The notes below the pieces were generated by a model that made no database searches, was not told the origin of the DNA, and worked only from the letters and a program-made list of their open reading frames with translations. From Guillardia theta CCMP2712 (lineage: Eukaryota; Protista; Cryptophyta), in the NCBI RefSeq assembly GCF_000315625.1, contig NW_005434532.1, positions 33,410 to 97,409 of the forward strand: 64,000 nt of DNA, given 5' to 3'. The stretch's first letter is position 1, and every line of letters begins with the position of its first letter. The position numbers and the translations under genes were made by a program. Below, one piece after another: positions 25,111-30,051 of the stretch.

Positions 25111-26085
25111 CCCCTTGTTGTTACCTATATTAAAGCTTGTAGGTGGTCTGCAAAGGGGGTGGAGTCAGAGGGGGTTCAAACCAGGGGTCATATGATGGGT
25201 GAGACGTACGGTAGTTCTGCCGATAGAGAAGGGTAGGGGTAGGGTATCCCAATGACAGCTAGGGGTTGGGGTACTCAGTGTTAGGCGCCCCTTCAAATGA
25301 CCACCCACTCATTACACCCCCACAGGGGTCATGGCTCCATTACTTTTCAGTACCCTACCCCCGATTTACCCTTGACTTTGAGGGCGAGTGACCCCACCCC
25401 TACCTCTCGTACCCCTACGTCCCCCACCCCTACCTCCCCTACCCCTACTTTCCCCCCGACTCAACTTTCCCCTAGTAAATTTTGTAGCATTCCCTGTCAC
25501 CCGATGCCCACCCTACGTTGTGAATCCCTACCCCTACCTTCTACTACCCACCCTGTGTAATTGAGAAACTCGAGCAAATGAGCACCACCCTTTCACCTTC
25601 AATTTTCTTTCAAATATACCGGTCATACGTAAGTACCCACCCACCCTCGCTATTGAAAATTCAATGTTACCCTCTTGATGGCAGCCCATACTGTACCCCC
25701 TACCCCCTAATTTCCCAACAACTGAAACGCTTATCCTGCGAACATGCTGGGTGGTTCAGGCGAGGCCGCGATGTGATAAGGAGGGCTGCGACATGCTGGG
25801 TTAGATGGTTTTGATGAGGATGTAGTTATGGAGACGGTGAAACTCATCTTAGATTGTGGATTGCTGCACTCAAACAATAGATTTATCTAGGTTCAGGGAA
25901 AGAGATTTTTCTCGAAAGAGCTAGAGAGCAACAATCGCAGCTTTGCATGTTAAGGTCGCGCGTGTCAGCAGCATATCTTCCCGCATACATCTTGCAGACG
26001 ATTCCATCCCGCTGAAACACTGATTGCTTGCAGCAGGTGAAGCAATGCTCTTTGTAAGCTGAAGGCGAACTACCATACTAGCAGC

Positions 26086-28217
26086 ATGCCGCACTCCCAC
26101 ACATGGTCCACGGGTGACGAGAAGCATTGGTCCCGCAGCTCTCGAACGCCTCAGGAAGATTTTGCATCGTGGCATGTGAGAGGGGACGGGCTGCTAGGAG
26201 AGGCGCCCTTCACTCCGAAGCCTCCTGCTCAGCCATGTAACAGATATCGATACCCTAGGCCCAGTGCTACCAGCAGCGACGCAGTGAGAGCAAGCTCAAG
26301 ACCCTTCTCCTCCTCAAGACCCTTCTCCTCCTCCTCCTCCTCCTCCTCATCATCATCATACTTTCAACCCCATCAGAAGTTGGAGAGGGAATGGACAGTC
26401 TGGATCGACACCGCCAAGTCCAAGGTTCTGACCTCCCAGGACTTCGACCTCGAGCACTCGGAGCAGCACCCTATCACATCGTAAGTCTTCTCCCCTCCGT
26501 CACCATGGCGGCTGCTGCTAACATGCGAGTAGGTGGGACGACGTCCTGGAGTTCTGGAGTGCTCTGGAGGGTGGGAAGATCCCCCTGCAGCATGGCTGCA
26601 GTATCCGTTTCTTCCACAAGGGCATCAAACCGACGTGGGATGACTCGGAGGTATCAGCAGCTCTGGTGCTGCCGCCAGCGTGTCTGACGCCCTTCCTCCT
26701 GCCAGGCTCATGGCAAGTGGGTCCTGTTGACAGACCAAAAGGACACGCTTCACCGCCTGTGGCTGATCTGGAGTGCGCTGCTGGAGGCAAAGCACAAGAA
26801 CCTGACGCACATCTGTGGGATTGAGCTCAGCATCCGCCCGCAGCGCAACTCGATCGGGATCTGGAACCTCAAGGGAGGAAACTCCAACTTCATCAAGAAC
26901 ACTCGCTCCTTGCTCGTGTCTGCTGCCGGCCTCGACCCCCTCCACAAGCTCAACTACTTGATCATTCGGAATGCAGTAAGCAGCAACGGGTGTGCTGGTC
27001 AGAGCCTCAGGACTCAAGGCAGGAATGGCACAACGTTGATCGAGACGAAGCAGGATGGAGTGAGAAACTCAGCGTGGAGTCCTTACGGCATGTCTGTGGA
27101 GGATAGCTCCTTCAAGGGGGAGGAGAGTGGGTTATCGGCGGACTTGACTTGGCCAGGGGTGGGAGACAGGTTGTTCCTGCTAGAGCGAGCGTCGGGTGTC
27201 TCTGAGTGGGAGGCGAGGAGCCCGTTGATTAGCAGCGGATCGATCTGGAGTCCTTACCTCCACTCAAGCTTCCAGGAGCAGCATCGAGATGCAGAGCAAG
27301 CAGGGCAGGAGGAGAAAGATGGGCGACGAGATCTCGATGGGAGGTTCACGACCGCAGAGCTTCCTTCCTTCTTCCAGACGGAGGGACCGATGATCGATGA
27401 GCCTCTGGAGCCTGAGGAGGAGCTGAAGGAGGAGCAGGCGGAGGAGGAACAGGTGGACCTTTCACGGAGAGGGCGCGGGACCATCTCAACCGAGGACATC
27501 AAGTCATTCCAGGCGAGACTTGCTGCATTCGCCGAGGCGATACGGAGTAGAGAAGGGCCAGAGGGGGTCAGAGAGTCGAAGATGACTGCAAGAAGTGCTC
27601 AGAGGGAGGAGGAGGAGGAGGAGGAGGAGGGGAAAACAAAGAATGACAGGAGTTTCACGCCGTTTTCTTGCTGGGGGCAAGACAAGGACGAGAAGGAGCA
27701 GTTTGCAGGACACGACGAGGAGGAAGAGAATGCGGGAGGCGAAGACAGAGCTCCTGCAGGAGATCAGGAGGTTGATGATGACACAGATCTACAGGAGGAT
27801 GGGGCTGGGGCCGGAGAGTCGGCGAGGCGGTTAGAGGAGGAGGGGGCGGAAGAAGGGTCAAGACATGTCCGGTCGCTGAGCAGGGAGCTGCGGGTGAAGT
27901 TGCTGATGAGGAGCCTTATCACGACAGCGCAGCTCGAGGACAAGGGCGTCGTGCGAGGTAATCGAATCCGGACGCAGACCAAGGAAGCAAGGTTGCGAAC
28001 CACGGAAGACAAGAGGAGGAATGAGGGAAGGAGTGAAGGCGCGGCTATCAGGGCGTCTTTGGATGCCAGGAAGGGAGGAGGAGGAGAAGAGGAAAACAGG
28101 ATCTCGTGCGCGCAGCGGGTGGTGTGGCTGCTGCTGGGGTCTGGGCTGACATCGCTGATGGCCTTGCTGTACTTCTGGTTGTTTGCCGACACGATCTCAA
28201 GTGTGCGGGTGCTGTAG
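26086..28217 (+). CDS. eIF4E-family cap-binding protein with long acidic C-terminal extension and terminal TM helix (~674 aa; exons 26086-26480, 26533-26650, 26706-28217)
   Basis: QKLEREWTVW..ITS|WDDVLEFW..IRFFHKGIKPTWDDSE|AHGKW..LWLIWSALL..ICGIELSIRPQRNSIGIW is the eIF4E tryptophan pattern. The protein ends VVWLLLGSGLTSLMALLYFWLFADTISSVRVL*. Confidence 0.88.
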
Positions 28218-28914
28218 AGATTTTAACACTGCAAGCAGTGAAGAATGTGAAAGGGAGCAAAGCAAGATCAGATTGTGTCTTATCTTCTCTCCTGCCCTTT
28301 TTGTTCACTTGTCTCGTTTCTTCTCTTTGTGCAACTACACCTGCATTGTTTCTTCCCCGTTCACGCTCCCCATCCTTATCATCTTCCAATAGCTTTGTCT
28401 TGCCTCGGCCACATGACGACAACAATGCGAATAGCAGAAGCTAGCGCACAATCATGTAACCCGAGATGCGATGATCTTGCAAAAACGTGAAAGCGCATTT
28501 GCCATTCAGCCTGTCTACCTCGAACGCTCTTCTAGTCCTCGAGCGCCCGCAGTCTCAAAGAAAGAGAAAATCCGGAGGTGAACCAACGAGGTTGGAGAAA
28601 GAGAGCAGAGAATGTTTGACAGAAGAAATCACCGAGAGATGTTTTGCAGAAAACAGATGCAAGAAGGTTATCATGAAAGCAAGAGGAGTGGACGATACAA
28701 AGAGATAGGGTAGGCGCGAGGGCAGGGTGGAAACGGAACGAAAGGAGAGGCAAGAAGAGAGGAGAGAAGGGTAGGGAAGGAGGTAGAGGAGGCGGGGAGC
28801 CGGGGTGTGACGTTTCTCGGGTCATATAATAAAAATGTTTCATAGCATAAGATGTCCAATGAAGCTACAAAGATAAAACGAATAAACAGCAAACTGAGCT
28901 CAACGTCTCAGTCC

Positions 28915-30051
28915 TTAGCTCTCCGGGTGAGCCGTGACGACGTCAATCCATGCTGAGATCGCCATCATCCCCGCGAAGGAGCATGAGAGAGAGAAGGAGC
29001 ACCTGAGCAACCTCAGTTAGAAACACGATTGCCGAGCATGTCTACTCCTCCCCCCCCCCCGCCCTTCCTCTCCCTCCCTCCCTCCCTCCCTCCTCACGTC
29101 AACTTACATCGGGATCGACATCTCCTTAATGGCATCGGAGATCAACTCGAAGCACGCTACCCAGAACATGGCGCCCGCCGCAAAGCCCAGCCCAACGGGC
29201 TCCCACACGATGAACTGCTCCACGAAAAGGTAGACGGGGACGGCGATGAGAGGCTGCGGCAGGCTGGAGCAGATCGCCATGGCGAACGTCTGGAACTTGG
29301 GTACGCCGCGGGGAACGAGCACGAGCGCTACCGCAAGGCCCTCGGGGACGTTGTGAACGGCGAGACTGGCAGAGATGAAGGCGCCCAGGTGCGCTCCGCC
29401 CTTGCCGCAGAAGGAGACGCCGATGCCCAACCCCTCAGCGAAGGAGTGGAGGGTCATGACGGACACGATCAAGCAGATCTTGGCGGCCTCCAGCCCCGTG
29501 ATGTCCCCGAGCCTCAGGTCCTCGTACCCCTCAACGTAGCTCTTGGTGTAGCGCACAAACACCATGCCCAGGATGACGCCAACGATCACCCGCGTCACGT
29601 GCGAGATCTCGTAGCCGAGCAGGGAGGCGCCGTCAGGGTCCAGCGCCACTCCCTCCGTCACCAGGCTGTAGCTCGCTGAGAGCATCATGCCAGCAGCGAT
29701 CGCGTTGGAGGCTCCGAGCCAGAAGTCCGAGGGCTTGCTGAAGAAGAGCAGGGGCAGCGCTCCCAGCCCGGTGGACAAGGCGGCCAGCCAGCCATAGTAC
29801 CAGACATGCCCGACCGTTGGGACTCGCGCAGTGAGCGTGGCGGGCATGGTGAAGTAGGAGATGAGGGCCATGAGGGAGATGATGGCTGCGAACTGAAGCG
29901 TCTCCGACGAAACTCTCTTGCCCTCTGCACGGCTCCTCCTCTGGCAAGCGTCAGCATTCTTTCCCTCGCGAATCAGTTCCTTCTCCCCCTTCACGTTCCT
30001 CCTCTGCACGCTAGTCCTGTCAGTGGAGCACATGCTTGCCGCTGCAATCAA
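28915..30051 (-). CDS. ZIP-family (ZupT/GufA/ZIP11-type) metal transporter; 5' end uncertain
   Basis: STGLGALP, AIAAGMML, MTLHSFAEGLGIGVSF, LAVHNVPEGLAVA and GFAAGAM motifs. Last exon ~28915-29003. Confidence 0.92.

Follow-up and report, generated by a model that had tools for sequence, protein, structure and literature searches.

Proteins of the eIF4E family are usually treated as soluble cytosolic or nuclear factors. They are divided into three classes according to positions 43 and 56: both are Trp in class I; in class II, position 43 is Tyr, Phe or Leu and position 56 is Tyr or Phe; and class III combines W43 with Cys or Tyr at 56 (Joshi et al., 2005; PMC1260017). Although its residue 56 is Cys, vertebrate eIF4E-3 still binds the cap in vitro (PMC1260017). 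Among protists, eIF4Es often fit none of these classes and have extended loops; in mimivirus eIF4E the W56 position is occupied by Phe, and the extensions of trypanosomatid EIF4E3/4 exceed 150 residues (Jagus et al., 2012; PMC3388326). The word ‘transmembrane’ has 0 occurrences in that review of protist eIF4Es. Here we describe a gene of the cryptophyte Guillardia theta CCMP2712, located at positions 26086–28217 of a 64,000-nucleotide (nt) stretch of contig NW_005434532.1 (hereafter the window), which encodes an eIF4E-family core, a long linker (the stalk) and a predicted C-terminal tail anchor in a single polypeptide of 674 residues.

Tail-anchored proteins, for example Sec61-beta, cytochrome b5 and the SNAREs, possess a single C-terminal hydrophobic helix and no signal peptide, and their bulk is cytosolic. 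Generally, the positioning of mRNAs at organelles is explained by nascent chains, proteins that bind 3′ untranslated regions (UTRs) or ribosome receptors. Membrane receptors for mRNAs or ribosomes include AKAP1, SYNJ2BP/OMP25, p180 and LRRC59, which carry KH, PDZ, basic-repeat or other modules; to our knowledge, they recognize mRNA bodies, 3′ UTRs or ribosomes, and none of them uses a 5′-cap-binding fold. A literature search for tail-anchored, transmembrane or membrane-anchored eIF4E found nothing relevant, and literature and protein searches gave no tail-anchored protein with an eIF4E domain outside the small family described below.

The G. theta protein resembles each of these systems in part. 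Judged by its sequence, it fits none of classes I–III, because position 43 is Trp and the candidate equivalent of position 56, in an extended loop, is Phe (Met or Leu in distant relatives), and it belongs with the atypical protist members. Like the class III proteins (metazoan eIF4E-3), this family has W43, apparently no W56, and an eIF4E fold. Class III proteins, however, are soluble, about 200–220 residues long, restricted to Metazoa and carry Cys or Tyr at 56, whereas the cryptophyte protein has 97 extra N-terminal residues, about 410 extra C-terminal residues with the putative tail anchor, and a loop that is 7 residues longer. 4EHP (eIF4E-2, class II) ranks with the best matches to the family core in both structure and sequence (5nvk, 2jgb). 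It is a translational repressor, a cap-binding paralogue that recruits partners and does not act in general initiation, and this is the likeliest role here too; on the other hand, 4EHP is soluble and lacks a linker and an anchor, and at position 43, where the cryptophyte protein has Trp, class II proteins carry Tyr, Phe or Leu. In the atypical eIF4Es of protists and giant viruses the extensions are N-terminal or internal, whereas the stalk and anchor of the cryptophyte protein are C-terminal. Its predicted topology is that of tail-anchored proteins, with the helix within about 10 residues of the C-terminus and the bulk of the chain in the cytosol. With receptors of the AKAP1/SYNJ2BP/p180/LRRC59 type it would share the concept of an RNA- or translation-factor-binding module on an organelle surface.

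The gene lies on the + strand and consists of three exons, from the ATG at 26086 to the stop codon at 28215–28217, with a spliced coding sequence of 2025 nt (Table 1). In the unspliced DNA, a 496-codon open reading frame (ORF) occupies a single frame at 26727–28217, and eIF4E-like pieces are found in two other frames. RNA evidence was taken from Logan contigs of three runs belonging to three different studies (X1, X2 and X3) and from the raw RNA-seq run X19. Both intron joints, 26480>26533 and 26648>26704 (cut +2), were present in contigs of X1, X2 and X3, and these contigs are RNA-derived because both joints are spliced in them. The spliced contigs were unbroken by any joint over 26704–27596, that is, 620 nt beyond a possible GTAAGC donor at 26976, and further RNA records ran from 27641 to 28256 (X3), 28727 (X2) and 28820 (X1). 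Untemplated A-runs followed position 28256, 39 nt past the stop codon, in 17 raw reads of X19; the signal of this 3′-biased library was confined to 27994–28335, and no other 3′ end was seen in it within 25600–29000. Because the contigs are unspliced through the stalk and the poly(A) follows the stop codon, the mRNA runs on through the hydrophobic helix, which is neither spliced out nor lost by early termination. The preliminary description of this DNA, made from the sequence alone, gave the right coordinates; its statement that the same exon continues without a splice holds for exon 3 and fails for the core, which is split by two introns.

Breaks in the RNA contigs were confined to two simple repeats, at 26315–26365 (Ser) and 27597–27640 ((GAG)n), and the contig method cuts reads at simple repeats. 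Both repeats, (TCC/TCA)n for poly-Ser and (GAG)n for poly-Glu, are coding, and every short-read RNA contig was broken there.

Table 1. Features of the tail-anchored eIF4E-like gene and its surroundings, in window positions.
Feature	Positions	Strand	Evidence or remark
5′ leader, approximate	26035–26085	+	RNA contig starts at 26035 and 26069
Exon 1 (start codon, N-terminal motifs, poly-Ser, beta1, beta1-beta2 loop)	26086–26480	+	
N-terminal motif HTWSTGDEKHW	26098–26130	+	
Second N-terminal motif RGDGLLGEAP	26179–26208	+	
Poly-Ser tract (exon 1)	26308–26358	+	
Strand beta1 with W43/W46 equivalents (EREWTVW)	26380–26403	+	
Loop stretch with W56 candidate F120 (DFD)	26434–26454	+	
Intron 1, 52 nt, GTAAGT..AG, NAGNAG-type acceptor	26481–26532	+	Joint 26480>26533 in X1, X2, X3
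Exon 2 (helix alpha1, W73 and W102/D103 equivalents)	26533–26650	+	Pfam IF4E match, alignments
VLEFW (W73)	26543–26557	+	
KPTWDD (W102, D103)	26627–26644	+	
Intron 2, 55 nt, GT..AG	26651–26705	+	Joint seen in X1, X2, X3
Exon 3 (C-terminal core half, stalk, hydrophobic helix)	26706–28217	+	One 503-codon frame
Exon 3 core part: HGKW, IRPQRNSIGIW (26832–26864), core end KLNYLIIRNA	26706–26975	+	Pfam IF4E, alignment to PDB eIF4E
Stalk, about 375 residues, mostly disordered, acidic	26976–28100	+	Motif conservation, AlphaFold2, dN/dS, RNA contigs
Stalk island AWSPYG	27072–27089	+	
Stalk island LTWPG	27144–27158	+	
Stalk island SIWSP	27240–27254	+	
Stalk island ELPSFFQT..PLEPE	27357–27416	+	
Stalk helix ISTEDIKSFQARLAAFAEAIRSR	27483–27551	+	
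Poly-Glu (GAG)n tract	27606–27629	+	
Basic amphipathic stalk helix (helix D) LSRELRVKLLMRSLITTAQLEDKGVV	27876–27953	+	
Juxtamembrane motif ISCAQR	28101–28118	+	Cys, Gln and Arg nearly invariant in the family (C502, Q504, R505, P0003 numbering)
Hydrophobic helix VVWLLLGSGLTSLMALLYFWLFA, residues 643–665, predicted transmembrane tail anchor	28119–28187	+	Kyte-Doolittle, conservation, AlphaFold2
C-terminal tail DTISSVRVL, net charge 0, and stop	28188–28217	+	Nine residues
3′ UTR and poly(A) site at about 28256	28218–28256	+	X19 reads; contig 13 of X3 ends at 28256
ZIP-family metal transporter, downstream neighbour	29104–30051	-	315-residue ORF; Pfam Zip 34.9 bits, E 1.3e-8, just under the cut-off of 35.1

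In the translated protein, residues from about 98 to 261 form the eIF4E core, about 262 to 636 the linker and 643–665 the C-terminal helix, after which nine residues remain. Pfam IF4E (PF01652; cut-off 28.7 bits) matched exon 2 with 23.6 bits (E 4.7e-5) and the start of exon 3 with 24.1 bits, both pieces being under the cut-off because the introns split the core. The orthologues all scored above it, with 48 bits in the Hanusia phi protein P0003, 53.6 in P0024, 37 in P0025 and 61.2 in P0006, where the match spans profile positions 2–156 of 158. PDB eIF4E chains matched the core down to E = 4e-9 in HMMER searches. The end of exon 1 aligned weakly with beta1 of melon eIF4E (‘HQPH-PLEHSWTFWFDN..AKSK’ against ‘FQPHQKLEREWTVWIDT..AKSK’; E about 0.8), which is consistent with a beta1 assignment. 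We modelled the family core with AlphaFold2 on the Rhodomonas sequence P0005:30-235, using alignment A2 (13 rows, including the pieces from the window), and obtained a mean predicted local distance difference test score (pLDDT) of 74.7 and a predicted template modelling score of 0.70. In a Foldseek search of PDB with this model, all of the top 50 matches were eIF4E or 4EHP, with TM-scores by target of 0.68–0.83. As modelled, the family core has the cupped-hand alpha/beta fold of eIF4E.

Residues were mapped by HMMER alignments to solved eIF4Es and by the family alignment. The equivalents of W102 and W166, residues 167 and 224, and those of R157 and W43/W46 are retained in the 674-residue protein. 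The dorsal motif (S/T)VxxFW, which contains V69 and W73 and is the site for eIF4G and 4E-BP (PMC1260017), reads DVLEFW in G. theta; W73, on helix alpha1, is conserved in every member covering the region, and V69 is Phe in some. PTW, with W102, is invariant in the family, and position 103 is Asp in G. theta, the metagenome contig L001 and Hanusia but Glu in most other members. W113 is kept in HGKW, with R112 replaced by Lys, and R157 and W166 in IRPQRNSIGIW are nearly invariant in the family alignment, which also has a conserved Arg at position 160 (RPxR). These alignments bear out the earlier reading of the sequence, in which W43, W46, W73, W102, R157 and W166 were kept, E103 was Asp and K162 was Ser.

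The C-terminal helix is the sole 19-residue segment with a Kyte-Doolittle (KD) mean of at least 1.6 among the 674 residues (1.91), the next one, inside the core, reaching 1.13. It comprises 23 uncharged residues with Arg and Asp on either side. The N-terminus, MPHSHTWSTGDEKHW, is polar, and a KD scan gave no hydrophobic N-terminal stretch; judged from hydropathy and polarity, the protein lacks both an N-terminal signal peptide and a second transmembrane segment. In every complete member of the family the C-terminal segment is the most hydrophobic one, with KD means of 1.39–2.08 (1.81–2.08 in G. theta, L001, Hanusia, P0013 and P0015), and 2–13 residues follow it. P0003, P0004, P0024, P0008, P0013 and P0015 share the position of the helix, and by alignment and hydropathy the helix is kept in the relatives. 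The most conserved columns after the core fall in helix D and in the juxtamembrane/transmembrane segment, where W508, G512 and T516 are the conserved helix columns (P0003 numbering; ten-sequence alignment). RNA, hydropathy and orthologues therefore support the preliminary view that one polypeptide without a signal peptide joins an eIF4E fold to a C-terminal helix of the tail-anchor type, and membrane insertion of this protein is a strong prediction.

In cryptophytes, the endoplasmic reticulum (ER) is continuous with the outermost plastid membrane. Basic tails send tail anchors to mitochondria, the plastid envelope or peroxisomes. The tails after the helix in this family are neutral or acidic (DTISSVRVL, SDSGVPLMII, SDSALPLSML and GGVPALFAQM), and the continuum of ER, nuclear envelope and chloroplast ER is favoured because these presumed lumenal tails are short, neutral or acidic and without basic targeting residues. 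Our guess for the host membrane is the ER or the chloroplast ER. A Cys lies four residues ahead of the hydrophobic helix, in (S/T)C(A/M)(Q/H)R, and is nearly invariant across the family; speculatively, a Cys placed there could be S-acylated on the cytosolic side of the membrane.

The acidic stalk, estimated earlier at about 400 residues, is about 380 residues long and has a net charge of -32, but it is not featureless, since conserved motifs lie along it and two helices are predicted. The Trp motifs (E/S)W(S/N)PY, TWP(P/G) and SIWxP are kept in every family member, and the most conserved columns of helix D are R430, S440 and R459 (P0003 numbering, ten-sequence alignment). The full-length AlphaFold2 model of the Hanusia protein was disordered except for the core and three helices at 300–318 (ISTEDIKSFQARL...), 430–449 (RELRVKMLMRS...) and 502–526 (the hydrophobic segment, pLDDT 87–91). 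No Pfam family was found in the G. theta stalk (26976–28214) or in the Hanusia stalk (P0003:136-537). Within their disordered surroundings, the Trp motifs resemble short linear motifs; elsewhere, Trp-based short motifs dock on hydrophobic pockets of partner proteins. The 674-residue protein contains no canonical YxxxxL-phi eIF4E-binding motif in cis. The helix LSRELRVKLLM was considered as such a motif, but the resemblance is loose and the ‘L’ position is Ala in relatives, and we do not claim it. The poly-Glu tract differs in length by 6 nt between G. theta and the 95%-identical L001.

An exhaustive HMMER search with an exon-3 profile against 1.84 billion representative proteins (E <= 0.001) found just 14 relatives, which form a small, distinct clade. 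The Hanusia phi protein P0003 (EukProt, 537 residues) shows 63% identity over all of exon 3, including the C-terminal helix. The corresponding Hanusia transcript contig, L010, encodes the N-terminal motifs, beta1/core, stalk and transmembrane segment, is contiguous over the intron 2 junction and ends in poly(A) some 70 nt after the stop codon. Intron 2 has been spliced out of L010, but intron 1 is retained at about 380–460 and brings in-frame stops between ‘...RTISS’ and ‘WNEVMEFW’; because of this retention, the database protein P0003 begins at an internal Met, without the initial part of the core. Core, stalk and C-terminal helix also occur in one ORF in P0004 (527 residues), P0024 (623 residues) and P0008/P0025 (736/757 residues), the last two on metagenome contigs of up to 111 kb, and P0013, P0023 and P0015/P0034 are C-terminal fragments carrying the same module. 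The full layout thus recurs in Hanusia phi and, at greater distance, in two or more metagenomic lineages, and the stalk motifs are common to relatives at about 30% identity. The named relatives, Hanusia phi and Rhodomonas salina (the cluster of P0005), are both cryptophytes; the Rhodomonas ORF runs off its contig, so that its C-terminus lies outside the covered sequence. The N-terminal motifs recur in P0006, in L004, L007 and L009 and in L010; in L004, L007 and L009, which are loci of the metagenomic relatives, exons further upstream supply the N-terminal core segment missing from the ORFs, together with the motifs SWSxGDxxxW and GDGLLGDxP. The ATG at 26086 is supported because the relatives’ loci carry the same two motifs.

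When the Hanusia core was used in a word search for long proteins with an eIF4E domain, only the query itself came back; a word search with the family core alignment returned metagenome fragments only, and full-length searches of ESM Atlas gave no usable feature match. With the core alone (P0006:170-375), the nearest IF4E clusters in ESM Atlas were mostly from Nucleocytoviricota, with a score of 0.87, which is below the counting level and serves as a lead only. In P0006 (L002, 5225–6398) the whole core lies in one intronless ORF, and the stalk (WSPYG) is set apart by intron-like low-complexity stretches; intron positions therefore differ among lineages.

The metagenome contig L001 (ENA ERZ930064) has 95% DNA identity to the G. 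theta locus and shares its two introns and its open frame. Within the ORF the indels between the two measure 12, 6, 3 and 3 nt, all multiples of 3, and those in the 3′ flank 4 and 10 nt. Against L001, dN/dS was 0.09 for the exon-3 core part and 0.36 for the stalk, compared with 1.15 and 0.96 for the stalk in the other two frames. Against Hanusia (L010), where dS is 0.8–1.4 and thus near saturation, dN/dS was 0.04 for the core, 0.23 for the whole stalk, 0.07 for the LSRELRVK helix (27876–27953), 0.37 for the juxtamembrane segment, transmembrane helix and tail, and 0.44 for the most acidic part of the linker. By these measures the stalk is coding, with constrained islands between loosely constrained acidic spacers. 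The gene is expressed as a single mRNA of the structure given above, its ORF is under purifying selection along its length, and the layout is conserved in several lineages. We conclude that the full layout of eIF4E fold, motif-bearing linker and predicted tail anchor is real, expressed and conserved, and defines a small clade, seen so far in cryptophytes and in environmental eukaryote contigs.

Our reading is that this is a functional nuclear cryptophyte gene for a divergent eIF4E-family member built for the cytosolic face of an endomembrane, and we give it a probability of about 0.72. The C-terminal helix would be inserted post-translationally, leaving the core in the cytosol on a tether of some 380 residues. 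The core would grip a cap-like 5′ end atypically via W102, W166, R157, Arg160 and D103, by analogy with class III proteins that lack W56, and the conserved linker motifs would recruit partner proteins. Our best guess is a specialized regulatory cap-binding scaffold, not a general initiation factor, that would hold a subset of messenger ribonucleoproteins or eIF4E partners at the membrane. The protein may be a cap receptor at the ER or the complex-plastid outer membrane, as the preliminary description proposed. That the protein is dedicated to recruiting or silencing specific capped mRNAs at the ER/chloroplast ER, with its Trp-Pro motifs and basic helix docking effectors, we put forward only tentatively.

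Several points weigh against the membrane-anchored eIF4E that we favour. Membrane insertion, topology, localization and cap binding are all predicted, and the fold was modelled on orthologues, not on G. theta’s own spliced protein. No single G. theta RNA record bridges the whole mRNA, owing to the breaks at the two repeats described above, and the Hanusia contig that bridges the second repeat keeps intron 1. In the pocket, K159 and K162, which normally contact the phosphates, are Gln and Ser in G. theta (Thr and Cys in relatives), and E103 is Asp in the G. theta lineage. W56 had been read as apparently Phe, and F120 in ‘DFD’, conserved in Hanusia, Rhodomonas, P0006 and P0009, stands as the candidate; however, the beta1-beta2 loop has 23 residues between the equivalents of W46 and I63, in contrast to 16 in human eIF4E, which makes the alignment of W56 ambiguous, and the F120 position is Met in L007 and L009 and Leu in L004, which are distant members. 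The pLDDT of this loop in the core model was about 64. Such a pocket, with a varying second stacking aromatic and both lysines lost, together with the retained W73 and VxxFW motif, could belong to a pseudo-eIF4E anchored in the membrane, which would not bind the cap and would dock an eIF4G-, 4E-BP- or 4E-T-like partner on its dorsal W73 face as a membrane adaptor. We regard this explanation as doubtful, since W102, W166, R157 and W43/W46 are invariant across the family and position 103 is Glu in most members. In addition, absence of W56 does not preclude cap binding, because vertebrate eIF4E-3 binds the cap with Cys at 56 (PMC1260017). The additional conserved Arg160 is sited where K159 and K162 would touch the phosphates and may compensate for the lost contacts. 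Cap binding by the cryptophyte protein is plausible but would be atypical.

The hydropathy of the C-terminal helix is only 1.39–1.57 in P0004, P0024 and P0008, values that would also be compatible with a non-ER membrane or with a helix that contacts other proteins. If the latter were true, the helix would serve protein-protein contacts or oligomerization of a soluble protein and not anchoring; its conserved small residues (G-x-G-x-T) are typical of helix-helix packing. Small-residue motifs are, however, equally typical of interacting transmembrane helices. Given the higher hydropathy in G. theta, L001, Hanusia, P0013 and P0015, the 23 uncharged residues between Arg and Asp within 9 residues of the C-terminus, and the invariance of the extreme C-terminal position across members, a soluble helix seems improbable. 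An annotation artefact, in which the real protein is an eIF4E of ordinary length and the stalk and helix belong to its 3′ UTR, to an intron kept in the transcript or to another gene downstream, is hardly credible. The consensus-like GTAAGC precisely at the core end would invite it, as would the purine-rich composition of the stalk, which gives few stop codons, and the Hanusia contig is an example of intron retention in such assemblies. Nevertheless, a joint from 26976 was absent in all RNA runs and the spliced contigs read through this position, so we rejected it as an intron. Purifying selection in one frame only, and indels that preserve this frame, show that the stalk is coding, its motifs are shared with relatives of only about 30% identity, and the sole poly(A) site lies after the stop codon at 28217.

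Some further observations concern the transcript. A weaker, longer form of the 5′ leader, from about 25745, was present in some RNA contigs (X1, X2), and it contains 8 upstream ATGs, each with a short ORF (25745–26085). The main transcript start is probably near 26035–26069 because RNA depth climbs about 5-fold from about 26035. Loose contig ends at 26032/26035 (X2) were considered as a spliced leader and rejected: their 19-nt sequence recurs reverse-complemented at 26229, and we took it as a library adapter. The acceptor of intron 1 at 26528–26533 is a tandem AG (gcgAG TAG G), of which either choice is in frame; the RNA contigs use the distal AG, and exon 2 starts at 26533. At 28058, 12 of 44 X19 reads have G for T, which turns the Ser codon TCT into TCG, a synonymous third-position variant that is probably a strain or allele difference. 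Across both introns, 107 nt in all, there is one mismatch to L001 (98% and 100% identity), against 95–97% identity in the flanking exons and 89–91% in the 3′ flank; the introns look more conserved than synonymous sites, on small numbers.

If this interpretation is correct, a tail-anchored eIF4E fold would be a new way of coupling the 5′ end of an mRNA, or the partners of eIF4E, to a membrane. On the more tentative reading, in which it recruits or silences specific capped mRNAs, it would allow localized translation based on the 5′ end and independent of the route through nascent chains and the signal recognition particle, and it could matter for the heavy traffic of plastid proteins over the outermost membrane of the complex plastid. 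Even with a dead pocket, a membrane-bound pseudo-eIF4E scaffold would be new. The defined gene, anchor and conserved motifs offer an experimentally tractable handle on localized translational control in algae with complex plastids.

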